64,000 bases of DNA, from contig OZ316899.1 of NCBI GenBank assembly GCA_973895155.1, positions 2,379,573-2,443,572 of the forward strand, written 5' to 3'. The stretch comes from Marsupella aquatica. Lineage: Eukaryota; Plantae; Marchantiophyta. Positions 1,857-37,900 of this stretch are shown one piece after another. The position numbers and the translations under genes are program-made. The number at the start of each line of letters is the position of its first letter. Position 1 is the first letter of the stretch. Under the pieces are notes generated by a model. The model had not been told where the DNA came from. It did not search any database and worked only from the letters and a program-made list of their open reading frames with translations.

Positions 1857-1898
1857 CTTGGGGGGGTCACTTCCGCGGAAGTGACCCATCACGTGCGA
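1857..1898 (+). repeat. Left TIR (G7TCACT - 15 nt - CATCACGTGCGA)
   Basis: Both blocks match the reverse complement of 16754-16792 with identical 15-nt spacing. Contains the perfect 24-bp palindrome GGGTCACTTCCGCGGAAGTGACCC (1864-1887). Confidence 0.85.
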
Positions 1899-2629
1899 AG
1901 AAGTATAGGCCCTTTTAATTGGGTTGGGCGGAAGACTTCCAAAGATTTGTGGAAGAACAATAGGGGTTGTTTTATTATCTCGTCAACTTTTAAGAACTAT
2001 AGGCCCCCATAAATAGGGCTGCCTTCCATGGAAGGCATCCAGGTAAGTTAGGGGTTTTATGTATAACATTTTCATGCAACACGTGGCAGTTGCTAATTGG
2101 CACACATGGCACCTTCCAATTGCTACACCTGGATTCTCTAGGAAGTATGATGAACAATTGTCAATGAGTTTGGAGACTAAGTTTTGAAGTCGCCTTGCCC
2201 ATTTCAACATTCCAATTTTTGAGACTAGCAAGACACAATTATGTAGTACCCTTACTAATATCATACTATATCATACTAGGTTTAAATTGTTTTGGGGGCA
2301 GGGGAGGAGGGGGAGTGTATTGGTTTAGCCCCAATTTGAAACGAGTATAGTTTGAAATTTGGCAAGGGGTGGTTTGGGGGGTTTTGACACGGTTATTAGC
2401 AGCCGTTGGATCTCTAGGGTTTTTGGATCCAACGCACTACAATGCCTTGGGTAAGGGTGGCCGTCATAGTAAGGATTGAGGAGGGGGGCGATTGAGCTTG
2501 CGCAGGGAGGAGGGGGTCCATTGAGCTTGCGCGGGAGGAGGCCACACTCTAGCTTTTCCTGCTTCTGAGCTTGGGCGAGAGGAGGAAAGCATTTCGATGC
2601 TCGGGCGAGACTGAGGAGGAAAGTTGATT

Positions 2630-3130
2630 GATGATGCTGTTGCTCACCATCTCCAATTGCTATTGCTGCTGCTCACCATTGTTGTTGCTACTACGAGACC
2701 ATTGTCGTTGTTGTTGCTGCTGCTGTTGCTCACCATCTCCAATTGCTATTGTTGCTGCTCACCATTGTTGTTGCTACTACGAGACCATTGTCGTTGTTGC
2801 TGCTCGCCATCTCCTTCTGCTATTGCCACCATCGCACATTTATGCTTGTCGGGTGGCCTTGTGAGTGCTGCTCGCCATCTCCTTTTGCTACTGCCACCAT
2901 CGCACATTGTTGCTCACCACCGCCTTGTGAGTGTTGCTCGCCATTGTTGTTGCTGCTACTTGCCATCTCCTTTTGCTACTACCACCATCGCACATTGCTG
3001 CTCGCCACCGCCTTGTGAGTGCTACTCACTGCCACCAGGTTGCTTGCCGCTACTGTTGAGTTTATGTCCACCATTGCTTCTCGTTGTTGCCATCGCCACT
3101 GAGTTGTAGCTCGCCATTGAGTTGCAGCTC
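2630..3130. repeat. Degenerate TTG/CTG-rich tandem repeat region
   Basis: An ~87-bp duplication (gctgttgctcaccatctccaattgctattg...) and repeated ccttgtgagtgctgctcgcca units. Confidence 0.75.
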
Positions 3131-4532
3131 GCCATCAAAAGGTATGAATGAGTGTTGCGGTTGGCCATCCCTCACCTTGTATGCTTTGCGCTGGCTATCC
3201 TTCATCTCTTCAGCTCTGCTTTGCACTGTGCAGGGAGTCCATATCGGGACACTGCCAATCAATCAGCTGCCCTCCGGTCCGTGTCGGTCATTTTTCATAT
3301 TTGTAGTGTTTTTGCACTCACGTCCTCTCCTCTCTCTTTCCCCCCTACAGCTTTTAACGACAACATAGGGTTTGATTTCACCACCATTCGATTCCGGCCA
3401 TTCTCAGTAAAGGCTCCCGCTAGAACTAGTAACCGTTCAATCTCCCCTTCGTTCTTGTTTCTTTTGTACTTATTGGTTGAATCCTTTGTCGGCGCATTTC
3501 ACCCCTTTGTAGGACAACAGTCTATAGTCTTAAACTCAATACGAGTTTCTTTAGTTCTCTCAAGACTGGGCATTCTCTTTTGTTTTGTTTCTATTCTGGA
3601 ATGACCTCTCTCTTTCTTGCATGCGCTGACTGTCTGTCTATGTAGTCTCTACCACAGCAGTGACGAAGTTGCCTGTTGCTATTTTGCTGCATGCATAATC
3701 ACTGCTAGAATGCTTTGCTTTGTAATGTGCTCCAGCATTGTTGCCTTAATGCTTGTTGCTCTAAGATTCATTCTCGCCAAATTTTTCATCCGAGCCTTGC
3801 TGTGGAATGTCTGTGCATCCTGCTTTTGTCAAACTATCAATGATTTGATTTTGTGTCTATGTCAAAAGCAATTAGATTGAAATGTCAAATTGTATTCCCT
3901 TCCCGGTTGTTGCTTCTGAACTTTGGTCGCTTGTCTTCTATTACATAGACCGCCTTGAAATCGGCAGGTTGGCTTCAGAACAGTAGTTCGTTTGCAGCAA
4001 TTGAAAAGCTTTGAAGGAGGTGGATCAACTGTGGCATTTTTGAGTGTTGTTACTACCAAATTCCACTGCGAGGTAGGTATTTGGTAATTTATTTGGACAG
4101 CAAAATAGTAACTTGTTTGCTGTTAAGTAGAATGAGTTCACTTCAGTTTATTGAAACATATGAACATTGAGTTTGTTCCCATTTCTGTGTCATGCAGGTA
4201 CTGTGTGGTTGACCTTGGTACCATCTGCTTAGTTCAATATCTTCAGTAGGTTTGAAGTCTTGGCAAAGTGCATCCAGAAGCATAGGTATATTGAATAGAA
4301 CTGCATCCCAATTTGGTGGATTCAAATGTCCGTATGATTGTTAGGTTTTGCTTAAATTTGTGATGAACATTCAATCTGTTTCAGTGAACATGTTTATCCT
4401 TCCTTGCTTTAGTCTTATGTCTCTTTTGTGTTTGACGTGTGCAGAGACTTACGGTTGTAGTACCCACCTACTTGGAGTGCCCACGTAAGCTCCACTCTAT
4501 TACAGACATCCATAGTGACAGTTTAGCATTTA

Positions 4533-4991
4533 GTGATGGGTTGTAGGCTTGAGACTACAGCCAAGCCTAGTATAGTCTCAAAGCCAATTTTCCGGGATGT
4601 TAATGCCATCTTAGTTCCAGGTGGATTTTCCAGAGCTCATTTTGAAGTGTTTCGCACAAAGCTTAAGGAACGCCAGGGTGGCCAATCCGAGGACCTAACC
4701 AGTGACATCACTCACATTGTTGCTGGATCTTGGGCAGCAGTCATGTCCAAGTGGTCATGGTCTGAAGTGAATTGTCTAGTTCAAAAGCACACATTGAAAG
4801 TTGTGTCATTTGAATGGATGTGTGAATCCCTTAAGGTAGGGTTCCGCTTGCAAGAAGACCTTTTCAACTTAATGTTGACAGAGACAGAGTCAAAAAAAGA
4901 TAATAGAAAGAGAGAAAGAGAGAAAATGAAACAGGATGAAGCAAATGCCAATTGGAGGAGTGTGAACTTGATCAGACGCAAATCGGTGTAG
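4533..4991 (+). CDS. BRCT-domain ORF or exon (resembles the DNA polymerase lambda-type N-terminal BRCT), transposon cargo
   Basis: FRTKLKERQGG...ITHIVA...VVSFEWMCESL...F has the BRCT pattern (G-G, THxV, WxxxS). Possible acceptor ttccag at 4615-4620. Confidence 0.7.
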   Translation: MMGCRLETTAKPSIVSKPIFRDVNAILVPGGFSRAHFEVFRTKLKERQGGQSEDLTSDITHIVAGSWAAVMSKWSWSEVNCLVQKHTLKVVSFEWMCESLKVGFRLQEDLFNLMLTETESKKDNRKREREKMKQDEANANWRSVNLIRRKSV

Positions 4992-5133
4992 CTTATTGTA
5001 TATGTGTCCCATGATGTTGAAGCACTTATAAAGAGGTCTTTGTCTGTTGCAAACTGTTGCAAAGATTTTCAAATGGTTGAGATAGTAACTTCACTTTCTT
5101 TTCTGCAGGGTCTATTGATATATTGCGGGAAGT

Positions 5134-5830
5134 GTGGAGGTTTTGTTGAGGCCCCTGTTGAGGTTGATCCTTGTCCCTTGTTTGTTGTGGCCTTGTCATT
5201 TTGTTAGAGTTCACAAGCACAATCTCAGTCTAGGTGCACTGAAGATGGTTGTGACTCGCAACGCACTCTCTCAGTACCATCAACAGAAGGGTGAGCGATT
5301 TTGTTTGAAGATGATTCACAGTGGGGTCGTGCCTGTAGACTGTGCTGTCACTTGGGGCTATCCAAGTGTGCCTCGCAACCATTATAGAAGGCTGAATACA
5401 TCCCCACCAGTCCCAAACAGTATCCGTCTAGTTAAACAGACAGTTGGGGTGCTGGATGAGGACTGTGTCTTCTTGGAGGCTTGTCTCCATTGTCACACCC
5501 AGACATGTGATCGTTGTAGGCGAGGTGACTCAAACAGAGTGCAAACTTTTGCACAATACATGGCAAGAATGGCATGGGGTGGTTGCCTAGCATGGAATAC
5601 TTGTCATTTCATCAATGATTGTGTCTGTGGTGGGACACGTCCAGGTTCTGCCCATGATAATGATGCACATTCAAGTTGCTGACTTGTAATTCTGCATTGC
5701 TCACATTGCAGGATGGATCAAAGGAGCCCACAGGGAAGTGATGCCCCTGGTGGAGGCTACTGGCTGTGATTGCTGGTGGACTGTTGCTCCTTTTGGTACA
5801 TCACATGCCTGCCCCTAATTTTTGAAGGTA
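5134..5830 (+). pseudogene. Cys/His-rich decayed ORF, possible zinc finger or PHD remnant
   Basis: CLHCHTQTCDRC, and a downstream VDCCSFWYITCL segment after stops. Confidence 0.35.
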
Positions 5831-6547
5831 ATTTTGCAGATCTTGTTCAGCATGGCACACATTGCTCGTCAGTTGTTGGATCCAAGATTTGGGCATAGGG
5901 AGCACCTTTGTATGGATCCCCCTTGTTGTTTTCAATGTGATGAGGGAGGAACTGTTTTGTTCTGTGATGGCCCTTGTGGTTGCCATTTTCATTATGTAGT
6001 TGATGGCCACAACCCCAATGAAGAAGATGGCCATGGACCTACATGTGAGCGCATTGTCATTTCCAGAGGACATGATTGGGCTGCAACTTGGCTTTGTGAC
6101 CTATGTCAGCAAAATAGAGGAAGATGTTTTGGTTGTGGACTTCTTGGCAGAACCTTGAGACCCAGCACAGACGAGCCCCTTGTGGTCCAGTGTTCTCATG
6201 ATGACTGCTACTCTTTTTACCATGTGGGCTGTCTCCAACTACTTCTGCATTTGGGGGAAATGCCTGTCACCCGCCATCCAGATAACCCTGATGCACATCC
6301 CGATGCTCTTATATGTCCACAACATTACTGTGAGGTCTGTAAGGAGTATTGGGAGGGCATTTGGGATTTTGTCCAATGTTGTAGATGCCCTCGTGCATGG
6401 TGTCGTGATGAAGGACCAACAGCAAACAGGCACTTGAGGAGAGGGGTGAGGGGCCGAGACACCTGGGACATTGGACAGTGGCGCATGATTTACTGTAATC
6501 GCCATGTCATTCCAGAGGGTTTTGATATCCCTAGTACCCATGACTAG
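5822..6547 (+). CDS. Tandem PHD-like fingers, EDM2/NSD-type, transposon cargo
   Basis: CFQCDEGGTVLFCDGPCGCHFH...WLCDLC...CFGCGLLG...VVQCSHDDCYSFYHVGC...ICPQHYCEVC...CCRCPRAW follows the Cys/His spacing of the plant EDM2 triple-PHD region. Confidence 0.8.
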   Translation: MKVILQILFSMAHIARQLLDPRFGHREHLCMDPPCCFQCDEGGTVLFCDGPCGCHFHYVVDGHNPNEEDGHGPTCERIVISRGHDWAATWLCDLCQQNRGRCFGCGLLGRTLRPSTDEPLVVQCSHDDCYSFYHVGCLQLLLHLGEMPVTRHPDNPDAHPDALICPQHYCEVCKEYWEGIWDFVQCCRCPRAWCRDEGPTANRHLRRGVRGRDTWDIGQWRMIYCNRHVIPEGFDIPSTHD

Positions 6548-6615
6548 ACACATCTTATAACTTTCACCTTTTTTGGAGTGGACCCATAAGACAACCTAAA
6601 TTATATGAACTTAAG

Positions 6616-9600
6616 TGTGGTGCGTCCCATGGCTCCCTAAACCCAAGAAACCCCCCAGCTCAAGCCGATTCCCGCGGGTTTCGTGCTTGGCGAGGCCGTT
6701 TCCGCGGCTTAGCGGCATGGGACGCTGCTAACCTTCTACTACTACTATTAACATTTTACACACATATACTGGACAGATCCTTCATCGGGTCATGAGATAC
6801 GTAGCCGGCCTAATATAGGCCTTCCCCTGTCTTCCCCTGTCTTCCCCTCCGTCTTGTTAGGTATGTTTGGATTCCGCCGCCGGAATGATCCCCAATAGGC
6901 TTGGTTAAGCCGCTAAGACCTCTCTCAGCTCGACACATCCAACTCTCACTCCCCTGCTTACTTTCCTTCTTTCTGTTGATGTGGGCACTCTTCACACAAG
7001 TTAATGCGACACACAAATAGCAAAATGACTCATTCTGACTGAGTCATACCATGCACTTGCCATACAAACAGTACATCTCATACACAAGTTCTGCGAACTA
7101 AGCCGTGAGGCCAACTCTATTCAGCTCTTAGGCATGAGGAAACATGAATATACACAAGGGTCACTGTATGACTAACCGAGAGCTTCTCGTACTACTTGAT
7201 CCCAGCCCGGCTGGTGCAAACTAAAAACTTGCTAAAGAAGAGGCCCTGAGCTCCCCGCTGCCCAGGTACTTATCCTGGTAGTGGATCCGCCATTCTTTGC
7301 ATCGTAAGCCTAATCTACTTAACAGTAATCTACTTGCCCGAATCTACCTATGTACAGCAAGGCAGGAGCACAAGTGTTGCTCCTACCAGTGGGACCGCAA
7401 TCCCACTAAGCTAAGTGTCAGGGCCGCTCCTGGTTCTGATCCTAATCCTAAACGTGGAGATCCGTGCCCGCCCTGCCCACTCACGCCTCCTCCCTCCACG
7501 TCCGCCCTCCCTAAAAGGAACGGCGCCCTTGCACCGTCACGACACCGGTGGTGGATCCTCAATGGACGCCCCCAACACTTCCTCCTCAGCCACTGCCGTT
7601 GGCCCGCCTACTGACAGATTACCTGCCCTTGACCGAGTCAACTCTCCCTCGGCCTGACTGGGTCCACCTTCGGCTTCAGCCTCGACACCGGCCTCGGCAA
7701 TACCCACGGCTTCGGCTTCAGCCACCCCCACGGCTTCGGCTTCAGCCACTCCCTCGGCTTCGGCCTCCCCTTCCCCTAGGGTAGTTGGATCCTTAGCTGT
7801 GACCCTGTCTGGGGTCGGTGCCGGGTCTACCTCCTTGATCACCACGGCCTGTGAAGTCGTATTACTCCTTGACCCTGAAGGTTTCCGCTTCTTCTTCGTT
7901 GGTGGCTCGGCAGCTGGTCCCTTCCCCTTCCCACTTACCTCCGGCACTGGTGCAGGTGGCGCGGCTTGTCCTTCGGCAATTACCACCCCTGGTAACTGGT
8001 TTGTCCCAACAGGAGATGGACCTGCTGCAGCTAAGCATTTAAATACTGCGGCTTGTTTCTTCAGCCGCTCTGTTTGGTTGTCGGCCCGCCGCTGTAGGTT
8101 CTCCATCTTCCTCGTGATTTCCTCCAACTCCTCTTGGGTTTCATCCAGGTCCTTACGTGCCCCCTCCAGCTCGTTTTTGGCCTCCTCCTGCTCCCTGTGG
8201 GCTTCCTCCAATTCCTTCTTCAAGGTAGCCTTCTCCTCCTGGGTTGCTCTTAGCTCCTTGTCGAGCTCTGCAATGATGACAGACTCCATCTGGTTCATCT
8301 TGGCGTAAGTCTGTTCGAGCATCTCGTCCTTCTCCCTTAGGTCGGCCTTGAAGCTGGCCGTCAGGGACGCAAGCTCCTGCTGCAGCGCCATAATCCCTTG
8401 ATAGGATTTCCCTAACTCGACCTCCTTCTACTCAAGGGCTCCGCGGATTTTCTCGAGCTCCCCTTTCAACGCCCATTCCTTTCTTTGGGTCTCCGCCATG
8501 GCCCGGCTGTTGGCTGTTATGTGGGCCTCCTCTGTATTCTTCAGCTCTTGCTTCCACTTTTCCCTTTCTTTGATCGTGTCGGCCAACTCTTCCTGCGTCT
8601 GAGTCAGTTTATCCTTGATATTCTGATTATCAGCCTGCGCGGCGTCCAACTGCCCCCGCATGATGTTCAGCTCATGTCGTTTAATCCGCAGTTCATCTTG
8701 GGCTTTCTTGGCCGCCCTTAGATCTTCAATCTCGGCTTCCATCCTCCTAAGCCGCCGAATGACCTCGTCCTTCTTGCTTCTCTCTAAAGCCACCGCTTCT
8801 TCTAATTGGTGCTTCTCCAACTGCTCCCTATGGAAAAAGGGTCCTACCTCCAACTCCTCTCCAAAGATGCCGAGCGCAAGTTCCCCACACATCTCACCAT
8901 ACTCCATGGCTCTATTCTTAGCGTAGGTGGAGTAAGTAGAAGTGATCGGCATCGCCCATCGTGGCCTCTGCTCCCAAGCCGTCCTGCGGATCTCTTCAAT
9001 CGTGGCTAGAGGTTTGCTTCCTTTTTCGGCTAGCCGCCTGATGTCCTCCGGCCAATCTCCTCCTGGTAAATCCTTTTCCTTAGCCAGGGCGGCCTCTTCC
9101 TCCTGCTTGATTCGCTCCTGAAATTCCTGCACCGTCTGTTTTATGCCGTCGAAGCTCGGGGGAGCAACATCTGGTGGGGGAGACTCAGGGCTACTCTGCT
9201 GGTTGGGGTCCCCTCGCACTACCCTTGGAAGTGTGGGGACAAACCGGCCACAGGTCCTTACTCCTGGAACGTGATGGTCCGACCCATAGCCGGAATTATC
9301 ATGGCTGCAGTCCTCCACTGCCTCCTCTACCTCTTGGATTTCCGGCTTCTCCCTCTCCTCTTCCTCGGTAGGAGCTTCAGGCAATTCTGCCTCAGATTCG
9401 GAGCTTGAGGTTCCCACGTACATTCGAACACCTGGCTTGGATTCCGGCCTGATTCTCTCGTCTCCAGCAAAGGGGTTTTCTCTTGTGAGCCGGTGTAGGC
9501 CTACCTCTGTAGTAGTGTCCTGCATGGTTGCCGTTGCCGTTGTTGTTGCCGATGCCGATTTCTTTTCTTTCTCCAGTAGTTTCAGCAGACTCTGCATGCC

Positions 9601-11272
9601 TGGTTGCTGCATTGGCAAGTCTTCCTTCCTGGGCCTAAACACCTGCTCGATCGTAGGACTAACAGGTGGTTGAGGCTTCTCAGCCAACGGCCTCGGCGTT
9701 GGAGCTTCCTCGGGTGCCCTTACCTGCAGGGGAAGTACCGGGGCAAAAGTCTGACCTCTGGCATACCGGCACAACAGCGGCATGTGATAGCCAAGCCGCG
9801 ACACGCTCCCCATGCCGATTACCTGCTGCTCCTCCTTTAAGATCTTCTTCAATTGGTTGAGGAGGTACCCGTTGTAGTCCCGGCTTGGGTCTGGCCTTTC
9901 TGCCAGATAGACCTGTGCCTTGCCGATCTCTGCCCTCGGCAAGTTACAATGCATGGTCACCCGCAAGAAGTCGATCATCTCTCCTATGTGCGGGTTGGTG
10001 CAGGTGTTCCGGAAGAAGCCATTCTTCGTTGATGGCCCGGGGAACGACCGGAACTCCTTGTCAGGCAAGGTCTTCCTGGTATCAACTTTGGTCTTATTGC
10101 CCATCGGCAAGCCAAACACTTCGGCAATCACCTTGGGAGTAAGATAGAAATCCTTCCCATATATCCTCGTGCAATTGGTCTCGGGTTCCCATGACCCCAC
10201 GAATTCTAATAGGTCTGACTCCGGTACCTCCGGCTTCAGCCATGGTAATCTTACAAAGGCCTCCAAGCCGGATCCGGCCATGAAGCCTTGGTACTTCTTG
10301 GTCTGCATGGCCGTAAAGCATGCATCCTCCTCCCGTGCAAAATGTAGTTGCACCTCCACCGGTAGGGTTGCCGCCCAGCCCTTCCAGGTGTCATCCCTGG
10401 TTGGAATGGCCTTGATGGGATCGACCTCCTCCTCTTCGGCTTCTCCCTGCCTCCTGCTCTGCTGCTCGGCTGGCTTCTTTGGTGCCGTCGACCTCGTTCT
10501 TTTTGCCGGGGTGGCTTCATCGTTGACGGCTCCCTTCCTCTTCATCTCTGCTGCCGTGGAGGTTTCTCCTAGCACCGTTGCCTGGGTCCACCTTTCCGTG
10601 CTACCCTTTAATTCCCAGTGTATGTCGTTGCAGTTCTTGATGGCCTCTCGGATGCCGACGACGCTGTCCTTGCAAAACAGAAGATCGTCGAGTTGATTGG
10701 AAGTAGGCGTCCACAGGAACTCGTCCTTGATGAGTTCGCCTCCTAAGAAAGCCGTCTTCTGCAGCTCCCACAATCGAGCGAGCTCCTGCCGTTCTCGAGC
10801 TGCCCTTTCTGACTCCTCGTCCTCGTAAGTCTTGATGTACTCAGTTGCCCGTTCGAACAGGCATCCCCAGAAATGTGCCGCTTGATTGACGTTGCTCATA
10901 CCCTCCTTAGGTTGATCGTCGGTATCTACTCTCTCCCCGAGTGCTTGCCTAAGCAGCTGACAGTAGTTGGCCTCCCGTAGTCGTCTGCCTAGTTCGTGCT
11001 CGCAAATGAGCCACCATCTCCTGCAAGCGCTCCTTACCCCTCTCCTCTGCCGGTCCTTCTTCCCGTTGATCCTTCCTAGCCGCCGACGCTTAACGCGCCC
11101 TAACCCTAATCGGGTTTTCACCCTCAGCCTTACCTCCGGCCTCTGCCCGGGTTCCATGGTTGCCCCTAATTGTTTATATTTTCCTTGTTTTGTCACTATA
11201 CTAAGGTGTTCCTAGGGTGCCTTCCTGCTTTACCCACTTAACCGGCCGAGTGATTCCTGTCTAGGCATCACA
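6616..11272 (-). mobile_element. Giant Gypsy solo LTR, family A copy 1 (4657 bp)
   Basis: TGTGG...TCACA ends. TSD TTAAG at 6611-6615 and 11273-11277. Colinear second copy at 30079-38759. No internal terminal repeats and no gag/pol. Confidence 0.88.
7537..11196 (-). CDS. LTR-encoded ~1200-aa protein (basic N-terminus, PMD/Transposase_32-like domain, long coiled coil) with one premature stop at 8428-8430
   Basis: ORFs 8428-11196 and 7537-8391 are in frame. Copy 2 reads GALEQKEAEL where this copy has GALE*KEVEL. Motif LLEFVGSWEPET...LTPKVIAEVFGLP. Confidence 0.8.
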
Positions 11273-11381
11273 TTAAGTATTTGGTTGAATGCTATGGACT
11301 TAAGTACTTGGTTGAATGATGTGGACTTAAGTATTTGGTTGAATGAAATGGACTTAAGTACTTGGTTAAATGAAAATGGAC
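11273..11381. repeat. 4 x 27-28 bp tandem repeat (TTAAGTAYTTGGTTRAATG...TGGAC)
   Basis: Units start at 11273, 11300, 11327 and 11354. Confidence 0.9.
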
Positions 11382-11570
11382 TGTAACAAAGTGGACTCAC
11401 TGAAGTGTTTTATTCACTCCAATGGATTGAGTTTAGAGTTGAGTGAATTATGCTAGTTGTGAATGGTTCAAACAAGTCCTGATCCTTTTCCATCTCTGTC
11501 CATTGTTGTATGACAGGTTCATCTACCTGATCCCTGTCCCTCACTTTCACAGCCTGTATAACTGTCCATC

Positions 11571-14500
11571 ATGGCAAACCTAGGCATGAGCACTGTCAGA
11601 TTGGTAGAAAAGGGTGAGGAGGGAGGAAAGCCTGATACGCCAATCTGTGTCATGTCCTTCAAAGAAGGGCAGACTTTGGCAGACTTCCGTACCAAATGTG
11701 TTGGTGCAGTACAGTTTGACTTTGATTTTTGGGATGAGAGGTTGCCTGGTCGAGTTCGTCGCTTTTCAGAGAAGACGGTTGGGGTGACTGAACTTCAAGG
11801 GACAGTTTATGTGATTGCACAGTTACCCTCACTTGCCTTGCCTCCTGAGAGGGTCACTATTGGTTCCTCTCATTCATCTGCTGCCACTGTGTCCAATGTG
11901 GCAGGCACGCCTCCATTGTCTCAAGGACAAACTCAAGGGGTGCCAATACAGGCTACTGTACAGCCTGTGACAGGCTCCTTTGAGTCTCACCTCATGTCTG
12001 AGGTTGCATCAAAGACCTGGAATGATGAGTGATTGAAGTTACGATCCTGGGTAAACCAGAAGGGCTTCTGTGACCACAAGTGGAGAGTGCGGACGTGGGA
12101 TGAGGAGGGGAGTGTCAAGGGCATCTAGAGTGCTTAGAGTGTAGGGAGACTTATGGGAATGCAGCCAATTCACAGGTGCTCAAGTCCATTGCCAACTTCT
12201 TTAGCAATTTCAAGACAAAGCACCTGACCAACCCTAAACACAAGGAGAATTGGTGTAAGCGAAGGGGTTTACCAGGAGCTCTGGTGACAGCTGCTTACAC
12301 TATACAGCAGCCATTGTTTGATCATAGTATGCAAATAGGGGCTGGGGTGGAAATAGTGGGAAAGTTGAATGCAGAGGTAGGTGGGGTGGTAGAAGTGTTT
12401 ACTATCACACCATCTCCCACTGATCCAACATTTGCACAAAGGTCATTCTTGTTTAAGGTCAGATGTACAGTCTGTGGCAAGCTACATACTGACATGTGCC
12501 CTAAGAAATCCAATTTGGAACACAATTTAAGACAACACCTGGTGAGTCGGGATCATATGGATGCACTTGAGAGCGTTGTGACCAGTACCCAGGCTGCACT
12601 GAGGGCAAGGAAGAAGGGGAGACCAAGGAAGCCTGATGCTCGTGATCTGTTTCCATCTCAAAATTCTATTTTGAATTTCTTTAGAGAGGACAGCTCTGCT
12701 GCAGGGAGCAGTTCAGGCAGAAGTGGGTATTCCTCTATTGAGCCAAGTGTCAGTTTGCTTTGTTGGGGCATGTGGGAGTCAGAGGTCAAGTGGACAGGGG
12801 ATTCTATGGCTGTGAAGGGCATACTTGATGATCAGGAGGGAGGAAATGTCTGGGACTATGATCGTACAGCCTGTGCTGAGGTTTTCAATGTAACTAGCTA
12901 GTCAGTTGTACATATACAAGGTTGTTTTAGGCACACGCAATGTCACAGGGTGTCCATTAATGGAGGTGGTTTTCAGAATCTCACTTGCACTCTATGTGAT
13001 TCTATAAAATGTGAAGATGATTTTCATGGCAAGGTGCACAGGGAAGCGGAAGCTTTAGTGCATAGAGGAGAAAGAACTACACATGGTGGGATGAGGTTGG
13101 CATACTTGACCAAAACCGAATTGAGGGAACATGTTGGTAACCTCACCACTCGCTTTAGGAAACAACGTTGGCTGTTGGCACAACAAGCTCAGAAAATTTG
13201 TGCCCTGAGTGTTAGGCGAAAGAAGCTAGAAGATTTATTAGGAGTAGCCCATGATAGGAAAGATTTAAGACTGTTTTTGAGGAATATAGTGAATGGACAT
13301 AGGTGTGGTGCTTTTGGTGGCAAGGAAGGGTTGTGGGATTTCTTGACAGATGTAGCCAAGAACTTGCAGAGAGTTGCTAAGGGTTATCGTTATAGTAAGA
13401 GAACCAAGGCCTTTTCCCAAGCCATGTTCCAGTTTGGAGGTAGACAAGTGGCCCATTGTTTCCAGGCAAACCTAGGTGGTCCAGGTCTGAAGACCTTGAA
13501 ACATGATAGAGCAAAACTACCACCCTTTAGACCTGGCATTCGCAAAGAGATATTCCAGGAGGTATGCAGAGTACTATGTGCATCAAAGCAGTCACTTGGA
13601 ATTTCAGAAGATGTACCAGTAATGTTTGCAGAGGATGAAACAAGGATAAAAGAGAGACCCACGTTTATGTTTTTGTCTCTGCCGTAAATTAGCTTCTTCT
13701 TTTGAATGTGTTGGGTGATCTTGCAAGTCATGAGCTAATGTCGGTATTGTATTGTGTGTGACATATGGGAAGCTAAATATGACACCCTCATTGGTTTCTG
13801 TGGCCCCTTAGAAGAGCACACATGTTCTTTTGGCTTGGAAGTACTCGTTGGAGCAGGTACTGAAGGGTATGACAAGATTGTAAGTACTTTTGAGCAGTAT
13901 GCCAAAGGCATGTATGCTAGAGTAATCATTGTCAATCCTTTGCATGCAAAGGTGCCTAAATTGGCATTGTGTGTTCTACCAACATGTAACAAGTTTAAAG
14001 CTACCTGGGTAAGAGAGCATTGGGTGCAGCTAAAGTCCATGTGGGACACACATTGCAGAGATAGTGTTGGTCCTTTGTTGGGCCATGCTAGTGATGGTGA
14101 TGCTCGTTGCAGGAAATTGATGATGGAAGATTATACTGCTGTGAATGGTTCCTTTCCTAGGTACAGTGTGGGATGGGTTGGGTGGCAATACTCAGTGTCC
14201 ATACTTCCGAATGGAGATCTATATGGTTTTGGAGACCAAGACCCACCTCACAATGGCAAGAAGGCAATTAACCCATTGGACCGAGTGTCTGCTATGTTAG
14301 TTCTTGGTGATCAGCATGCATCTTTGTCATATGTCACATCTGTTTATAACCATTATGCAATTCACGAGCATGGTTTGCATTGGGATGATGTGAATAGGAT
14401 AGATAGACAAAATTGGGCTGGCCCACAACGAATAGCTTCCAGGAGAGTGCAGGCCTGCCTGCAGCATATGTATGAGCGACGAGATGTTTGTCATGACAGA

Positions 14501-16157
14501 AGCTTTGGGACCATGATATACTTGGAGGTTTGTGCAGACTACATAGATATTTTCTTCTCTGTTAAGCATGACCTAAGAACCCGTGTTGTCTTGGCATCAA
14601 AGGTATCTTGGTTCTTCCGATTGTGGAGGCTATGGTTGAGGTATGGTGATCATTTTGTGACAGGGAATGCTAGATCTATCACAGAGAAGAACATGATTTA
14701 TGTGCAGGCTTTCCACGATATCAACATGTCTTGTCATTTTGTAGTATTGTTAGTCTATGCCTTTCGGGACAAGTTCCCATATCTGCAAGTTCCATTTCAC
14801 TTGCTGGGATCAGATTGTTGTGAGATATTTTTCAGCAAGGTAGGTGGCATGAGTGGCCATGAGAGAAATTATGACTTTGGATCTCTATTGGACAGTGGGA
14901 CTGAATCGACTAGCTGGATTAGAGTATGGACCAGAGGGATTGAAGATACGTCGATCACATGATAAACAGGATCATGTTTGGGCAACTTTACATCCTCTGG
15001 ATGAAGGAGAACAAGCTCCAAATTTATTTGATTACTCTGTAGTTCTGACTAATGAGCTGGTTGTTGATGCTCTAAAGGAAGGTTTGCAGGAAGCAAAGGA
15101 TTTGTTGTGCAAGCTGAACATGTCACCAAGGAGTTCTTTGCCAGCAGCGAAAAGACGATGGTGGGTTCATCCTTGGGAGGTGGAGGCAGAGACTTGGCCG
15201 AATACAAGTGTCATGAAAGAGGCTATGTTATGTGATGATGTTGAAGACACAGTTGAGCATCAATCTATTGTAGGCCCTAGACCTGAGCCCCCAATTGGAG
15301 AGTTTCTAGATTTTGAAGATCCTGAAGAAGATCTCAATCGGATTGATTCATGGGACACTCTGGACAGTCAGGATTGTGTTGAGCCACTAACAGTTGATGA
15401 TTGTTCGATTGAGGTGGATACTAACCCATTTTGTGAGATGGAGACACTAGGACATGAAGTAAGGCATGTCTTGGTTGGAGTTCAAGCAGACTTAACTGAT
15501 GTGCAAACACCCCGGTCAGTAGTGTCTACTGTAACTTATGAGGGGAGGACTATCTACAAGTCCACTCTTGTGAGTCAATTGTGCTGCAATCCTTTCATGT
15601 CAAAGGATAGGCTAACTAGGATAGCCCAGAAAACCTATTACACTACTGGTAAGGAGAAAGAAAATGGTGACTCTGTGACTTGTTTGGTTGACATTGGTAC
15701 TGATATAGCAGTTTTGTTTGAGTTTGCTACAGAGGTTGGTCCTTCTACCAGATCATCCAAGTCAAAGAAGAGGAAGGGAATAGATAAAGGGCCTATTGTT
15801 GATGCAACATCTACAAAGAAGGAATATTGGTTGGGTAGGATTGAGTTTATGATATAGAAGAATGGCTCCCATTGGGTCAGACGTTGGAAAGCAATAGATC
15901 TGTTGGACAGGCATGTACCTGCAGTTGGACAGAGTGGAAGTGTGTGCCGCTTGCAGTGTAATTGGTACAAATCTACTGGTAACAACAAAACTTTGTTCAC
16001 TTATGATGCAACAGATGGACAATGGATTGATATTGAGATGGTAATTTCAAATGTGAACTTGACAATGAAGTTTGGGATAGTTGACAGAGTGTATGTACTA
16101 GATGCAAGTGACTTGCAAGCTTTGACTACATACATTCAAAGTGTGAGTAAATTGTGA
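11571..16157 (+). pseudogene. P-element/THAP9-like DDE transposase, decayed, probably intron-containing
   Basis: FAEDET (D at 13634), HASDGD (D at 14093), DPPH (14240-14251), DRQNW, GSDCCEIFF (E at 14822). N-terminal C2H2-like fingers and the AT-hook KGRPRK. Stops or frameshifts near 12032, 12901, 14962 and 15857. Confidence 0.8.
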
Positions 16158-16753
16158 TATATAATTGACTATTGTTTATTAAAAGTAGTTTGTTGTGTGT
16201 GTATGCGATGCATGTGTAGGGTTAGTGGGAGGGAGTAGAGTAGGGGATGGCGGATTGGCAAATTGAGATTTATGCTCAATCAGGGGTTCAATTCCCCTCC
16301 GTCATGTGGACATCATCATGCATGAGTCTGTGAAGGAAGGTAGAGATGTGGACATCATCATGCGGGAGTTTGTGAAACAAGGTAGAGTACCGATGCCTTG
16401 GATAGGCAACCTAAGGTGTTCGGTTACCTATTCATAGTATCTGGCACCCACCATGCTTCACTATTCAAGAGTGAAATCTACAAGTTGTTGGATGATGATG
16501 AATGCAATTTACAAGATATTCAGCTTCATGATGTAAATTCATTGAATGTATTGGAAATGCGCATCAATTTGCACAATTGGCTCTACACTATTGAGGTACT
16601 TTACTTTCCTTAATAGGCATTTTTTAAATCATCATAAAACTTTCCATAAAGTTTTATAGGGGTAAACAATTCAAAAAATTGTCACTTTTCAGAAAGTAAG
16701 GGTGTGAGGAAAAAAAATTCACTTAAAAGTTAGGGGGTCCAGACCCTAAAACG

Positions 16754-16796
16754 TCGCACGTGATGTAGAGCCCTACATACAGTGACCCCCCCTGAG
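16754..16796 (-). repeat. Right TIR
   Basis: TCGCACGTGATG - 15 nt - AGTGACCCCCCC(TGAG). The spacer overlaps the hairpin ATGTAG-agcc-CTACAT. Confidence 0.85.
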
Positions 16797-16804
16797 CCTT
16801 CCGT

Positions 16805-17842
16805 GACAAGATGGTACTTGGCTGCCCTGGGGCACTCCACAGAATGGCATATACGGGGGATCTCTGGAAGGCCTGGGAATTGCTGAGAACCAATCTGATT
16901 TTCTGTCCCTCAGAGCGGATACCTAGTAGATGGTCAATTGGTGATTTTCTCTGGTGTTTAAAGGGTACGTAGGCATGGAGCACTTGTGATAGGGAATCAG
17001 TGACTCTCCTTTTATGGTCAAGCAAAAGGAATGGATGGCAAGAGCTGGCAGGAAGGTGGCCACATCTATGTGGCTTCTCTGAGGAACACTTAACTCTTGG
17101 ATGCAGATTCATAGGGTTGCTAGCAGACATTACAAGATGTGAGTGGGGGATGGAAGCTAGGCCGGAGAGCTGGTGCTGGGCTGACAACCCAACAGCTCTA
17201 AGGGTGTTCAGAATCTCAAACAAGAGAGCCTATCAGATGCTGAGAGAGGAAGTGGGAGATTTACAGAGTTTAAACGGGAGATGGGAATAGCTAACACGGG
17301 CGACAAATGGAGTGCAAACTGGGCTGGACTGTGGGGTTTGGACTTGTCTATGAGGGCTAAGACATTTATGTGGAGAGTAGTGGCGTCTGGGCTCTTCACT
17401 GGGGTTAGGGCAGTCAAAATTGGAAAAGGTAATGGCGAGTGCAAGCTGTGTCCTGGAACACTGGAGTCTATTCCACACTTGTTCATGACTTGCCAACATG
17501 CAGAGCGATGTTGGCTGCTATGTTCTCAAAGCTTTGAGGGCATATTTGCTGATCATACTTGGGGGCTGCTTGGGATGATAAATTCTGCATTGGGCAAGGA
17601 TTACAGGAAGGTAGTTAAAATGTTTGTCTTAATCAGATAATGAGCATATGTTTAAGCAGGGCGGGGCCCGGAGGATTGACATTCGATTCATTCTCTCGGA
17701 GGCGGTGGATCATGTTACAGCGGTTGGGCTTACATTGCCAGCGAGCAACAGACGGACTAGGTTGCTGCGGGTGAAAGAGATGATAAACGTGGAGAGGTTC
17801 ACATGGTTGAGGTGTAGGGACTACTGGGTCACATCAGGATAG
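16805..17842 (+). mobile_element. 3' continuation of the interrupted LINE (zf-RVT region)
   Basis: In frame with 1856. ORF 17281-17640 reads LW...RAKTFMWR...CKLC...ESIPHLFMTC...W (zf-RVT). Confidence 0.85.
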
Positions 17843-18771
17843 TGTAGGAATGACTTAATGTGGGACAACAGGCTGGATGGGCTCCTGGATTGTTGTTGGA
17901 TAAGTTTGTTATGGTTGATAGGCTGGTTTGCTTTGCCAGGATAGCTGGTAGGATTACATGGTATGGGTGTTGTTTGAAGCCGATAGCATCTGTGTGTGTT
18001 GGTGCTTGGCTGCGATTTGCTGTGCTGGATATTGTGGCAACTTTTTTGATTGTTTCCCCGCGGCCATGGGGTTTGCGTGGCCCCCAAAGTTATAAAAATT
18101 TAAAATGTTTAAAGGAAAAGTGACAGAAATTCAACTACAAATAGGGTAGCATGAACCAAAGGAAAACAAAATAATGAAAGGACATTCCCTTTCATATCTT
18201 GAGGGTCCTGAACTAAAGTAAAAAGTATCAAAATATGCTACAGGAGTACTCAAGGTTCACTAGAATGCTCCTGGAATCAAAAATTGATCAAAAGTTATCC
18301 CTAGTGTTAACTGGAGTAAAAGTGTCATTGTGCCTTTGTGGTAAAACTAACAAATAATAAGTTTGTGGGAATTTTAACTTCTAGAATAAAAGTCAAAATG
18401 AGATGAAAACTTTTCTAGGTGGAAGAATTACATACATGCTACATGCTGGAAAAATTTCAGACTTTTCTGAGGTGTCTAAATGCCTCAATAAAATTGATGA
18501 AAAGTGCTTTTGAATATAAAATACACTTTTCCGAAAAAAATTCTAAGTGTCGGAAGCGTCATTGCGCCTTTGCGCCTTTGCACACTTACGCTACAGCAAA
18601 ACTAAAATGTTAACAACTTCTAAACTACATGTTGATTTAAGTTGATACTTTCAGGTAGGTTCTACTACATAAGGGCTACCTTCTGAAAAAGTATGAGACT
18701 TTTCTATCTATGCTTACTACTTAACAAAAATTGTTGAGATTAGCTAATCTTGAGCTGAAGGGTGGAGTAGG

Positions 18772-20400
18772 TCAGTCTTCTTGAAGCAGTGCTGTCTGGT
18801 CAGGTGGTTGAAAATTCCTGAATGTCTCTGTTCGAATCACTTCTCGAAGGAAATCCATAACCTGAGTATCATGTCGAGCAAAAGGTAGAGATCTGATTTG
18901 TCGTTCAGCATTTAAAACAGGAAGTAGCCTCCTGTGGAACATAGTGTTCACCTTACTAGCTTGCATGTAGATGCCAACCAGATCATAACTACAACAAGTA
19001 GCATGATAGTTACGTGGAAACTTGTTGATGAAGGTGTCAAAGTCCTTGGCAAGGGATAGAAGTGGAGTAACACTAGGTAACAGTTCCTCCACTTCAAGGT
19101 GTAATTAGCTAGCCGTTGTGAAGTAATGTTGTTCCAGATTCTCTGGCTCTCAGCAACCGGTGTAATGAAGTGTTGAGCAACAAAAGGCTTCTCTAGAAGG
19201 GCACCATGGTTAACTTGGTATCTTTTGTTGGTTTGCCTCAGAAAGTTGATGATGAATTCTAAGACAAAGGCAGGTAAGTTTCCAAAATATGCTAATTAAA
19301 GCCAGATCTCCATTCTCCAGCACAAGGTGTCCAACCAGAATCATGACAGCAAGAATAGGGCACAAATATTCAGCTTCTGTCCAAATTTCATCCATCTCTA
19401 CTATCTCTAAGCGGGTGACTTCCTTTAGATGAAGTTTCAGGATATAGAGACATTCAACTCTCTTCTTATGATAGTACTGCCAAAACTCTAAGATAGGAGG
19501 AGTTCTAAGGTCTGAAACTCTGACAAATTCAGCAAACTATTTAATACTCTCCCGAGGGGTCTTAGGGTCAATATGCGGTGGAATGAAATTGATCTGGCTT
19601 GACATGGGGGGAGGGTGTCAGGATAAGAAATAACAAGATGTTCACCTCTGGGTGTAATCTCAGGTTCTGGAAAACTGGGGTAGAGGTGGTGTGGTTGGTT
19701 GGAAGGAGTGTAAGGTGAGGTGGGTGAATGACTAGAAGGAGGGGAAGAATAAGGAAGGTGTGATCCAGACTCTGAAGTATGGTAACGTATAGTAGAGTAG
19801 ATCTGAGTGACATGACAATGGAATAGCCGTGCAAGTCTTTGTACTAGATCCTCACATATTCTAAATGATGATCTCAATTCAAGGTGGTAGTAGCTTTTTG
19901 TAACAGATCTTCCAAAACATCAACAACATCCTTCTCGTCACACTTCAGCAACTTAGCCATTTCAATAACAAGATCAAAGTATACTCAGTTGACCGTCCTG
20001 ATGAAGTTCCGAAGGGTTGTTGAAGTTCCGTCCTCAATGGTGATATAGCCTCTCGAGATCTGGTTCCTCCAAAATAGCATCAGATATTTGAGTAGTAGGG
20101 ACAATAGGTGTCATCAATGGAGCTTCAGTGGGTTCTTAAGTGTACTGAGCAAGTCCTTCAGCAGGCGAATAGAATGAAAGAGGACTACAGGATGCTGGAT
20201 TGGTGACAGAAGATATTCATAATCTTTCAACTGCATCAATGATTTCTTCAGGTCCACAAGTTAACAAGCTAGTTAGCTTGTCAATGATCTGTTGATTGAA
20301 TAATCATTGGGATAGCTTTTGGTAAAGGAACTCCGGCTACAACTCCCCCTACTTCCTCTTCTGTTGTTGCCATAGTTGAGGCATAAGTCAAAGTTGTGAA
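18772..20400 (-). pseudogene. Decayed ORF cluster of unknown identity
   Basis: Several same-strand ORF fragments separated by stops. No recognisable domain. Confidence 0.25.
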
Positions 20401-33726: not shown

Positions 33727-34984
33727 TTGAGGGCTTGTCGATCCCCCGACGTCCCCTCGACGCCCATAGGCTAAACCGCTCACGCTTGTGGTGTGCCGGC
33801 CACTCCGCCGGTCTGAGTCAGCGCATGTCAGTGGCCGCTTCCTTAAGTTTGTTATACGGACCCGAGGGAGGGGCCCCTCCACGCTCGTAACCCAGGTGTG
33901 CAAATAGCGACCAGCCGCCAGTCCAAACCTGAATTCCCCCTTATTGCCTAATGATATCCTACCCATAATGATTACCTAAATACTGTCGTTATGCTAATAA
34001 TAGCGGCCTAAGACACTCCTAACGCGCGTGCCGAGCGCAGTTAGACCGAATCACTCATTAACCGCCGTACCGGCGGCATCACAGCTCCCTAAACCCAAGA
34101 AACCCCCCCAGCTCAAGCCGATTCCCGCAGGTTTCGCGCTTGGCGAGGCCGTTTCCGCGGCTTAGCGGCATGGGACGCTGCTAACTTCCTTCTACTACTA
34201 CTATTAACATTTTACACACATATACTGGACAGATCCTTCATCGGGTCATGAGATACGTAGCCGGCCTAATCTAGGCCTTCCCTTGTCTTCCCCTCCATCT
34301 TGTTAGGTATGTTTGGATTCCGCCGCCGGAATGATCCCCAATAGGCTTGGTTAAGCCGCTAAGACCTCTCTCAGCTCGACACATCCAACTCTCACTCCCT
34401 TGCTTACTTTCCTTCCTTCTGGTTGATGTGGGCACTCTTCACACAAGTTAATGCGACACACAAATAGCAAAATGACTCCTTCTGACTGAGTCATACCATG
34501 CACTTGCCATACAAACAGTACATCTCATACACAAGCTCTGCGAACTAAGCCGTGAGGCCAACTCTATTCAGCTCTTAGGCATGAGGAAACATGAATATAC
34601 ACAATGTCACGGTATGACTAACCGAGAGCTTCTCTTACTACTTGATCCCAGCCCGGCTGGTGCAAACTAAAAACTTGCTAAAGAAGAGGCCCTGAGCTCC
34701 CCGCTGCCCAGGTATTTATCCTGGTAGTGGATCCACCTAATTCTTTGCAGCGTAAGCCTAATCTACCTAACAGTAATCTACTTGCCCGGATCTACCTATG
34801 TACAGCAAGGCAGGAGCACAAGTGTTGCTCCTGCCAGTGGAACCGCAATTCCACTAAGCTAAGTGTCAGGGCCGCCTCCTGGTCCTGATCCTAATCCTAA
34901 ACTTGGAGATCAGCGCCCGCCCTGCCCACTACGCCTCCTATCTCCACGTCCGCCCTTCCTAAAAGGAACGGCGCCCTTGCACCA

Positions 34985-37900
34985 TCACGACACCGGTGGT
35001 GGATCCTCAATGGACGCCCCCAACGCTTCCTCCTCAGCCACTGTCATAGGTTCGTTCTCTGACAGATTACCTGCCCTTGACTGAGTCAACTCTCCATCGG
35101 CCTGACTGGGTCTACCATCGGCATCGGCGTCGGCTCGGGAATCATTCTTGGCTACGGCCTCAGCCTCGGCCATGGTCTCCCCAGCCTGCTCAAGAGGCGG
35201 ATCTGGGATACCGGCCTCATTATTGAGTAGTTCGGCTTGGGCCGCGTCATCCCCACCTTTGGTGATAGCGGAATCTATTGCCGTGTTCATGCCGGAGGTT
35301 GGTGCTGGGTCTACCTCCTTGGTCACCACGGCCAGCGGAGTCGTATTACTCTTTGACCCTGAAGGTTTCCGCTTCTTCTTCTTTTCTGGTTCGGCAGCTG
35401 GTCCCTTCCCCTTCCCACTTACTTCCAGCACTGGTGCAGGTGGCGCGGCTTGTTCTTCGGCCAGTACCACTCCTAGTAACTTGGTTGCCCCAATTGGAGT
35501 TGGGCCTGATGAAGACAAGCACTTAAATACTGCGGCTTGTTTCTTCAGCCGCTCTGTTTGGTTGTCGGCCCGCCGCTGTAGGTTCTCTATCTTCCTCGTG
35601 ATTTCCTCCAACTCCTCCTGCACCTCGTCCAGGTCCTTGCGCGCCTCCTCTAGTTCCTTCTGGGCTTCCTCCCGTTCCCTGTGGGCTTCCTCCAGTTCTT
35701 TCTTCAAGGTAGCCCTCTCCTCCCGGGTTGCTCTTAGCTCCTTGTCGAGCTCTGCAATGATGACAGACTCCATCTGGTTCATCTTGGCGTAAGTCTGATC
35801 GAGCATCTCGTCCTTCTCCCGTAGGTCGGCCTTGAAGCTGGTCGTCAGGGACGCAAGCTCCTGCTGCAGGGCCATAATCCCTTGATAGGATTTCCCTAAC
35901 TCGGCCTCCTTCTGCTCAAGGGCTCCGCGGATTTTCTCGAGCTCCCCCTTCAACACCCATTCCTTTCTTTGGGTCTCCGCCATGGCCCGGTTGTTGGCTG
36001 TTATGTGGGCCTCCTCTGCATTCCTCAGCTCTCGCTTCCATTTCTCCCTGTCCTTGATTGCGTCGGCCAACTCTCATTGGGTCCGCGTCAGTAGATTCTC
36101 GATCATCCGATTATCAGATTGTGCGGTATCCAACTGGCCCTGCATGATATTTAGCTCATGCCGCTTAATCCGCAGCTCATCTTGGGCTTTCTTGGCCACC
36201 CTCAGGTCCTTGATTTTGGCTTCCCTTTCCCTAAGCCAACGGATGACCTCGTCCTTCTTGCTTCTTTCCAAGGCCACCGCTTCTTCTAATTGGCGCTTCT
36301 CCAACATCTCCCTCTGGAAAAAGGGTCCCTGCTCCAACTCCTCCCCAAAGATGCTGAGCGCCAGTTCTCCACACATCTCCCCGTACTCCATGGCTCTATC
36401 TTTAGCATAGGTGGAGGAAGTAGAAGTCATCGGCATCATCCACCGTGGCCTCTGCTCCCAAGCCGTCTTGCGGATCTCTTCAATTGTGGCTAGAGGTTTG
36501 CTTCCTTTTTCGGCTAGCCGCCTGATGTCCTCCGGCCAATCTCCTCCTGGCAAATCCTTTTCCCTAGCCAGGGCTTCCTTCTCTTCCTGCCTGATTCGCT
36601 CCTGAAATTCCTGCGCCGTCTGTTTTATGCCGTCAAAGCTCGGGGGAGCAACATCTGGTGGGGGAGACTCAGGGCTACTCTGCTGGTTGGGGTCCCCCCA
36701 TACTACCCTTGGAAGTGTGGGGATAAACCGGCCACAGGTCCTTACTCCTGGAACGTGATGGTCCGACCCATAGTCGGAGTTATCATGGCTGCAGTCCTCC
36801 ACTACCTCCTCTACTTCTTGGACTTCCGGCTTCTCCCTCTCCTCTTCGTCGGTAGGAGCTTCAGGCAATTCTGCCTCAGATTCAGAGCTTGAGACTCCCA
36901 TGTATATTCGAACACCCGGCTTGGATTCTGGCCTGATTCTCTCCTTGTCTCCAGTAAAGGGGTTTTCCCTTGTAAGCCGGTGTAGGCCTACCTCTGGAGC
37001 AGTGTCCTGCATTGTTGCCGTTGCCGTTGTTGTTGCCGATGCCGATCTCTTTTCTTTCTCCAGTAGTTTCAGCAGATTCTGCATGCCTGGTTGCTGCATC
37101 GGCAAGTCCTCCATCCTTGGCCTAAACACCTGCTCAATCGTAGGGCTAACAGGTGGTTGAGGCTTCTCTGCTACCGGCCTCGGTGCTGGAGCTTCCTCGG
37201 GTGTCCTTACCTGCAGGGGAAGTACTGGGGCAAAGGTCTGACCTCTGGCATACCGGCACAACAGTGGCATGTGATAGCCAAGCCGCGACATGCTCCCCAT
37301 GCCAATTACCTGCTGCTCCTCCTTTAAGATCTTCTTCAATTGGTTGAGGAGGTACCCGTTGTAGTCCCGTCTTGGGTCTGGCCTCTCTGCCAGATAGACC
37401 TGTGCCTTGCCGATCTCTGCCCTTGGCAAGTTTTAGTGCATTGTCACCCGCAAGAAGTCGATCATCTCTCCTATGTGTGGGTTGGTGCAGGTGTTCCGGA
37501 AGAAGCCATTCTTCGTTGATGGCCCGGGGAACGACCGGAACTCCTTGTCAAGCAAGGTCTTCCTGGTATCAACTTTGGTCTTATTGTCTATCGGCAAGCC
37601 AAACACTTCGGCAATCACCTTGGGAGTAAGATAGAAATCCTTCCCATATATCCTCGTGCAATTGGTCTCGGGTTCCCATGACCCCACGAATTCTAATAGG
37701 TCTGAATCGGGTACCTCCGGCTTCAGCCATGGTAATCTTACAAAGGCCTCTAAGCCGGATCCGGCCATGAAGCCTTGGTACTTCTTGGTCTGCATGGCCG
37801 TAAAGCATGCATCCTCCTCCCGTGCAAAATGTAGTTGCACCTCCACCGGTAGGGTTGCCGCCCAGCCTTTCCAGGTGTCATCCCTGGTTGGAATGGCATT

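Follow-up and report, generated by a model that had tools for sequence, protein, structure and literature searches.

P elements are a textbook family of animal transposons, and the question raised by the locus described here is whether an element of this kind resides in a land plant. The locus lies in a 64,000-nucleotide stretch of the liverwort Marsupella aquatica (assembly GCA_973895155.1, contig OZ316899.1, positions 2,379,573–2,443,572 of the forward strand), which is termed the window and numbered from its first letter. Positions 1857–16796 of the window contain a DNA transposon that is bounded by target site duplications (TSDs) and ends in terminal inverted repeats (TIRs). It is probably a cut-and-paste transposon, autonomous in the past and now dead in this copy, that belongs to the P-element (P/THAP9) superfamily as a divergent branch and is lodged in a land-plant genome. 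With the reference features of P taken from PMC7776569, the element matches P on five counts: the TSD, the D(2)H signature, a helix-turn-helix (HTH) before the first catalytic aspartate, the fold, and the terminal plus subterminal repeats. It comprises two transcription units on the same strand, an upstream gene with BRCT-like and PHD-finger exons and a transposase gene of ~1,400 codons.

Boundaries and termini of the element

Exact copies of the 8-bp TSD CCTTCCGT abut both ends of the element, at positions 1849–1856 on the left and 16797–16804 on the right. The octamer occurs three times in the window, two of these occurrences being the copies at the element ends, and a count of three was also reached in 17 of 100 shuffles of the window. 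The TIRs are 15–16 bp long. The 5′ TIR, CTTGGGGGGGTCACT (1857–1872, plus strand), is followed directly by the perfect palindrome GTCACTTCCGCGGAAGTGAC, and the 3′ end (16751–16796, minus strand) reads CTCAGGGGGGGTCACT...CATCACGTGCGA as its reverse complement, thereby including both the TIR and a subterminal motif. The repeats CTTGGGGGGGTCACT and CTCAGGGGGGGTCACT are one indel and one mismatch apart, and the 12-mer GGGGGGGTCACT that is common to both has no further occurrence in the window. The second 12-mer, CATCACGTGCGA, is positioned ~31–34 nt inward of each element end, at 1887–1898 on the plus strand and, inverted relative to this copy, at 16755–16766. By analogy with the internal sites of Drosophila P, the ACGTGCGA-like/CATCACGTGCGA subterminal motif is a candidate transposase-binding site. 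A blind search of window positions up to 20 kb, in which an inverted 11-mer had to adjoin an exact duplication of 8 bp, recovered a single candidate pair, at the coordinates of the element itself.

The element interrupts the open reading frame (ORF) of a long interspersed nuclear element (LINE). This host ORF spans 963–1856 as 298 complete codons and matches Exo_endo_phos (E 1.5e-11), and on conceptual translation the LINE frame remains open for another 55 codons from 16805, the first base past the second TSD copy. An earlier note, made from the letters of this DNA, had reported the TSD, the TIRs and the resumption of the LINE frame, and each of these held on re-examination, the TIRs with the addition of CATCACGTGCGA inside both ends. 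The host LINE (963–1856 and 16805–17640) itself looks internally deleted, the endonuclease domain being joined almost directly to the region after the reverse transcriptase (RT), and a zf-RVT domain is located downstream in it at 17281–17640.

Contigs assembled from public sequencing runs also bear on the left boundary. The match of diverged contigs to the element starts at 1855, and many contigs diverge from the window element at ~1965. Moreover, a left-terminal bin of ~180 bp (1868–2051) was at least 10-fold deeper than the bins on either side in Logan contigs from three runs. The deep terminal bin and the divergence at ~1965 suggest that short derivative copies resembling MITEs (miniature inverted-repeat transposable elements) abound.

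Organization and decay of the transposase gene

Transposase homologues are collinear with plus-strand ORFs across 11649–16112, and the first ORF starts at an ATG at 11571. The N-terminal region (11571–12901) is a domain common to proteins of the liverwort genus Riccia and includes a C2H2/BED-like zinc finger (CTVCGK...HNLRQH). Next come a CxxH/CxxC region, a coiled coil, the HTH region and the first catalytic aspartate (12902–13666); a 99-nt insert with three stop codons between EDETRIKER and IWEAKYDTL (13667–13765); the RNase H-like catalytic core with its helical insertion domain (13766–14896); and, after a frameshift, the C-terminal part in a different frame (14897–16154), all on the plus strand. 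A 907-position profile of the family (alignment A2) was mapped onto the window, and profile positions 12–195, 195–567, 571–815 and 816–899 corresponded to 13142–13666, 13766–14896, 14901–15776 and 15870–16142, respectively.

The catalytic motifs are intact in sequence despite the decay of the copy. The first aspartate is in AEDET (codon 13634–13636), the second in GHASDGD (14081–14101) and the catalytic glutamate in SDCCEIFF (codon 14822–14824), while the motif DQDPPH (14234–14251), located between the second aspartate and the glutamate, provides the D(2)H signature that is a core feature of the P superfamily. Further core motifs are DRQNW (14402–14416) and YIDIFFS (14540–14560). In family alignment A1, D114, H166 and their neighbors are invariant, and D369, H425 and E606 are conserved in A2. 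Thus, all of the motifs that the earlier note had read in the transposase (D(E), D, DxxH and SDxxExFF) were located. The predicted order of the full protein is an N-terminal domain with a C2H2-like finger, a coiled coil, a P-type HTH, a split DDE RNase H fold, an acidic linker and a BAH-like C-terminus; the part that splits the DDE RNase H fold in the model is an alpha-helical insertion domain.

The window copy is broken in four places, by two in-frame stops, a frameshift and the stop-bearing insert, and is dead, which contradicts the notion of an intact copy. The first stop (TAG, 12899–12901) falls inside a gap-free alignment with homologues and is therefore read as a nonsense mutation; the frameshift is near 14893–14900 and the second stop (TAG) is at 15855–15857. 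At the site of the 99-nt insert, the matched segments of the Riccia homologue are separated by a gap of ~430 nt and those of a metagenome homologue by none, and an intron, decayed or non-canonical, is the probable origin of the insert. No pair of canonical GT..AG sites was found that would restore the frame by removing the stops at 12899 and 13685–13738.

The last profile segment (15870–16142) corresponds to a predicted BAH-like domain in a relative of the transposase, P0072 (residues 836–943). The C-terminal 100 residues of the P0072 model aligned with the BAH domains of Rsc2, AIPP3 and EBS with Z scores of 7.1–7.6, a similarity which is suggestive of a BAH-like fold for the C-terminal domain of the transposase.

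Related elements in liverworts and beyond

Three further bounded elements were recovered, two of which are on chromosomes of Riccia sorocarpa and one on a metagenome contig. The first, L002, occupies 6251–16947 of chromosome CM100794.1 (10,697 bp), with the TSD CAAAGTTG and perfect 15-bp TIRs, CTCAGGGATGTCACT. The second, L003, occupies 9296–19752 of chromosome CM100799.1 (10,457 bp), with the TSD ACTTTTAG and the termini CTCAGGGATGTCACT and CTCGGGTATGTCACT. The metagenome element, L004, spans 7240–16179 of its contig (8,940 bp), with the TSD AGTAGCTT and termini CTCGGGGGGTGCAGT. The bounds of L002 and L004 were obtained from the same blind search for inverted 11-mers and 8-bp duplications, and those of L003 from a motif-guided search. 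Exact 8-bp TSDs flank all four elements, including CCTTCCGT in the window, the termini are all of the CTC(A/G)GGG... type, in the window element CTC(A/G)GGG..GTCACT, and a ACGTGCGA-like, ACGT(G/A)CGA-like motif lies 30–45 nt inside both ends of each element across the species. The expectation that other copies would share these termini and the 8-bp TSD was thus confirmed. Within L002, positions 7194–7459 (944–1209 of the element) include stretches that are 75–80% identical to both termini of the L003 subfamily in reverse orientation, and these may represent a nested short derivative. On another metagenome contig, L001, neither the blind nor the motif-guided search gave a bounded element; a gene matching Pfam DUF7869 (13915–14529) adjoins the family transposase there.

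A word-based search returned 71 transposase homologues, none of which has a Pfam domain on record. The named homologues are from the liverworts Riccia sorocarpa and Riccia fluitans and the fern Adiantum nelumboides, and the best named matches, at 56–60% identity, are those of Riccia. An ORF for a Copia RT matched Calypogeia fissa at 63% compared to ~46% for angiosperms, and both sets of matches point to a liverwort as the likely host. As bounded copies are present on two Riccia sorocarpa chromosomes, the occurrence of P-like elements in a land plant, which the earlier note had proposed, holds whatever the host of the window. An exhaustive profile search extended the family to 3,728 cluster representatives at E≤1e-3, including uninterrupted proteins of 1,000–2,200 aa, and structural relatives have been annotated as, among others, 'Cnidarian restricted protein', 'PHD-type' and 'C2H2-type domain-containing protein'. 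With this number of representatives and non-plant names among the structural relatives, the idea of a plant-specific lineage was not sustained.

Probable affinity of the transposase with the P superfamily

Structural comparisons give evidence for affinity with P. The AlphaFold model of P0072, which is 38% identical to the window core, had a predicted local distance difference test (pLDDT) score of 82 and a predicted template modeling (pTM) score of 0.73. In Foldseek searches of the PDB with this model, the P transposase strand-transfer complex 6p5a was matched with E 2e-11 and a template modeling (TM) score of 0.68 by target, followed by Transib at 1.2e-2 and Hermes at 0.09. Among Swiss-Prot models, P transposase (1.2e-11) and THAP9 (3.6e-9) were matched, and Ac and hAT-derived proteins scored 1e-3 or worse. 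In VIA-align comparisons, 6p5a gave a Z score of 21.4 with 408 of 442 residues aligned (model residues 145–641 to chain residues 133–566), whereas Transib reached 11.4, RAG1 9.8 and Hermes 8.6. The model displays the predicted P-type fold and domain order, in which an HTH comes before an RNase H fold that a helical insertion divides. The fold comparison with P/THAP9 and Hermes that the earlier note had called for, made here with the relative, thus favored P. Language-model and shape searches of the ESM Atlas likewise placed both P0072 and the window ORF among TNP-like/THAP9 clusters.

Profile comparisons pointed, less clearly, in the same direction. The P-superfamily Pfam models considered were PF12017, PF21787, PF21788 and PF21789, and PF12017, the P-type HTH, was matched by five of 53 relatives with a best E of 6.4e-5. 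A profile of the 53 members aligned collinearly with Drosophila P transposase (6p5a) at E 7.8e-4, the HTH regions being matched and LAFDEM lying opposite laeDET. In a second segment, FSDTPHLIKLVRN is opposite the D(2)H motif and WFDIFNS is opposite Y(I)DIFxS. Searches of PDB sequences with the core ORF in phmmer, and with an 18-sequence profile, produced nothing meaningful.

The resemblance to Drosophila P and to human and zebrafish THAP9 (6p5a, 6pe2) therefore extends over the 8-bp TSD, short TIRs and internal subterminal repeats; the coiled coil, the HTH and an RNase H fold interrupted by an alpha-helical insertion domain; and the DE(M/T) motif at the first aspartate, the D(2)H signature and the D-x-x-E-x-F-F glutamate motif, with WFDIFNS of P aligned to YIDIFFS and P as the best structural match by a wide margin. 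The two nevertheless differ in that identity is ~15% and the curated Pfam models of P miss the window transposase. P has THAP where this transposase carries a C2H2-like finger together with a long extension of the N-terminus, the Riccia homologues being named C2H2-type, and the C-terminus is BAH-like. Moreover, the element is 3–4 times longer than the 2.9-kb Drosophila element and has a second gene, the TIRs are 15–16 bp compared to 31 bp in P, and the hosts are liverworts and ferns.

A number of observations weigh against assignment to P. Pfam searches of the window element ORFs matched no transposase family, and no P model was significant. The profile match to 6p5a is borderline, and its second segment alone is non-significant. 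The structural evidence comes from P0072 and not from the window protein; the AlphaFold model of the 402-aa window ORF, built on a shallow alignment, was poor (pLDDT 55), and fold searches were made without it. A THAP domain had no Pfam match in the N-terminal ORFs of the window or among the families listed for the 53 relatives. The residues of P transposase that contact GTP include K400, V401, S409, D444 and N447 (PMC7776569), and the weak alignment retains equivalents of D444 and S409, but not of K400, V401 and N447. Finally, neither Kolobok nor Novosib has a solved structure; Kolobok was set apart by TSD and termini alone, and the comparisons covered no Novosib reference. The proposal of P-superfamily membership is largely upheld, as a divergent lineage: profile, language-model and structural comparisons are nearest to P/THAP9, whereas THAP was not found and the Pfam P models fail on the window.

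Alternative classifications

Zisupton/KDZ and Novosib elements have 8-bp TSDs and, like the present family, large transposases. The family might belong to another superfamily with 8-bp TSDs and poor domain models, Novosib especially, or might be a sister of P at superfamily level, P then being merely the nearest relative with a solved structure. This explanation is unlikely, but it draws on the failure of the P Pfam models on the window and most relatives, the identity of just 14–15% to P transposase in structural alignments, and the C2H2-like finger and BAH-like domain at the two termini of the protein. Furthermore, relatives within the clade scored E 1e-39 to 1e-17 in AFDB compared to 1e-11 for canonical P, a disparity that marks the clade as distinct. 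Data on the Novosib transposase are limited and uncertain (PMC5751038), and P-MITE records both P-type and Novosib-type MITEs from unspecified 'lower plants', classed by TSD and TIR alone (PMC3964958). Set against this are the matches to the P-type HTH, the collinear reach of the family profile into P transposase, and the large gap in Z score between P and every other solved transposase. For Zisupton/KDZ, no KDZ Pfam model was matched by the window ORFs or was among the 25 of 35 matching families listed for the 53 members at E≤1, and KDZ is set aside on this basis. KDZ elements are abundant in Basidiomycota and Rhizophagus (PMC5751038), and Basidiomycota is the commonest phylum in several ESM Atlas clusters that neighbor the window transposase family.

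Classification as a hAT or Kolobok element is highly improbable and already largely refuted. The DxxH and glutamate motifs and, for hAT, the 8-bp TSD would fit as well, and hAT elements such as Ac and Hermes further share short TIRs, a C/DxxH motif, an insertion domain that is all-alpha and N-termini that often bear zinc fingers; the Riccia termini also contain CAGGGATG, which resembles Ac-type ends. Against hAT, the P-type HTH precedes the first aspartate, neither a hAT dimerization domain (PF05699 or related) nor a BED match was found by Pfam in the window ORFs or the families listed for the 53 members, and the Z scores for Hermes were 8.0–8.6. Kolobok resembles the present family as a large eukaryote-wide group with C/DxxH-signature DDE transposases that lack a Pfam core model and with a second protein in some lineages. 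However, it is defined by 4-bp TTAA TSDs and 5′-RR..YY-3′ termini (PMC9587614), whereas the four elements here have variable, non-TTAA 8-bp TSDs and CT..AG ends. Kolobok is excluded by its defining TSD and termini, and hAT by fold scores and missing domains. That the region is no single mobile unit but a patchwork of unrelated repeats, with the TSD and TIRs matching by chance, has a negligible probability. The TIRs of the window copy are short and imperfect and the number of CCTTCCGT copies is unremarkable, but the blind search singled out the element, independent contigs begin to match at its left edge, and the LINE frame appears restored beyond it. The same architecture surrounds homologous transposases in L002, L003 and L004, and this four-element comparison refutes the chance explanation. 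The divergent P-superfamily branch therefore remains the favored assignment.

Accessory genes

The stretch 5′ of the insertion point of a nested long terminal repeat (LTR)-like unit is 4.76 kb (1857–6615) and contains an accessory gene region on the plus strand (2029–6547). A TATA-like box followed by an ATG with a GTAAGT donor is present at ~2010–2046. A putative BRCT-like exon (4527–4988) matches Pfam BRCT with E 0.0046, a score that falls short of the curated cut-off. A putative PHD_NSD zinc-finger exon (5819–6544) matches with E 4.6e-8, and both are on the plus strand. Tandem-repeat or low-complexity sequence occupies 2623–3109 of the region, and an 86-bp tandem repeat of 2.1 copies is located at 2623–2804.

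When the window element was compared with L002 and L004 by tblastx, the transposase was the sole matching part. The latter elements have extra DNA 3′ of the transposase, which in the Riccia element encodes a coiled-coil protein. The BRCT-like/PHD cargo is therefore, judged from the sequences compared, lineage-specific and not a trait of the family. The suggestion that other copies would carry the same cargo was accordingly not supported, the second gene of the Riccia elements being different and on the opposite side of the transposase. The description of a multi-gene family is likewise overstated: a second gene accompanies the transposase here, but the non-transposase genes differ between species. 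Nor is the element 'giant': its relatives measure 8.9–10.7 kb, and a length of ~10 kb, though large among P elements, does not merit that term.

The cargo is not confined to the window copy. One run includes a contig of ~85% identity that matches the window at the left end and over portions of the cargo as far as 5593. A homology search with the PHD ORF gave one match, a PHD protein of 64% identity that is encoded on a Logan contig, with a further ORF after its gene at a spacing similar to that in the window. In one public run (X3), the PHD-finger region (5364–6467) was up to ~100-fold deeper than the remaining cargo, and the PHD-finger module is probably present in other repeats of that genome also. 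Chromatin-associated modules recur in the clade: a Tudor domain is at the end of P0077, a SAP domain is at the end of P0093, and a relative in AFDB carries a PHD-type domain annotation.

The nested insertion and native length

The native element is interrupted by an LTR-like unit of 4,657 bp with TG..CA ends (6616–11272), which is flanked by the 5-bp TSD TTAAG at 6611–6615 and 11273–11277. A second copy of the unit, 91% identical, is at 34084–38759 of the window, and the G+C content of the unit is above that of its surroundings. Contigs from two public runs join 6616 directly to the sequence after 11278, so that copies without the nested insertion exist. Removal of the unit and one TTAAG copy yields a native element of 10,278 bp, in agreement with the ~10.3 kb given in the earlier note. 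The unit contains a 922-aa ORF on the minus strand (8428–11196) with no Pfam match, and its word depth in public runs, at least 10^5, is far over that of its surroundings. A 27-bp tandem repeat of four copies (11273–11382) separates the cargo gene from the transposase gene, and the LTR-like unit is inserted within this array.

Proposed mechanism and implications

By analogy with Drosophila P, the transposase would bind the subterminal sites and pair the element ends, excision would be effected by the D/D/E triad (13634, ~14093 and 14822 of the window), and reinsertion with cuts staggered by 8 bp would generate the 8-bp duplication. In Drosophila P, the stagger of cleavage is 17 nt. More speculatively, the BAH-like domain, together with the PHD protein in this lineage, might plausibly steer or protect the element via chromatin. 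After landing in the LINE, the window copy would have acquired its stop codons, frameshift and nested LTR insertion.

The literature searched, which did not extend to Repbase, contained no account of an autonomous P-like element from a land plant and nothing specific on P elements in bryophytes. For 1,007 plant genomes, a survey from 2025 looked for P via Pfam and reported seven other superfamilies alone as recently active (PMC12973397). As the Pfam P models fail on this transposase family, that survey would have missed it. In a survey of fungi, Pfam-defined P elements were confined to Pucciniales and Allomyces (PMC5751038).

A broader scenario is possible, yet doubtful. The clade may be an ancient, eukaryote-wide sister lineage of P/THAP9, unseen by domain libraries, in which a chromatin-reader module of its own (BAH-like, with Tudor, SAP and PHD elsewhere) replaced the THAP-centered design. 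Bryophytes and ferns may have retained it, with recent movement there, whereas seed plants would lack it, and the window lineage may have recruited a BRCT/PHD gene that guides insertion or escape from silencing by histone marks.

With the bounded P-like elements on liverwort chromosomes and the fern homologues, land plants are added to the hosts of the superfamily. These finds also bring to light a large clade without annotation, whose thousands of protein clusters are labelled 'hypothetical protein' by pipelines. Moreover, the recurrent pairing of transposase and chromatin reader offers a testable handle on insertion-site choice or defense by DNA transposons.

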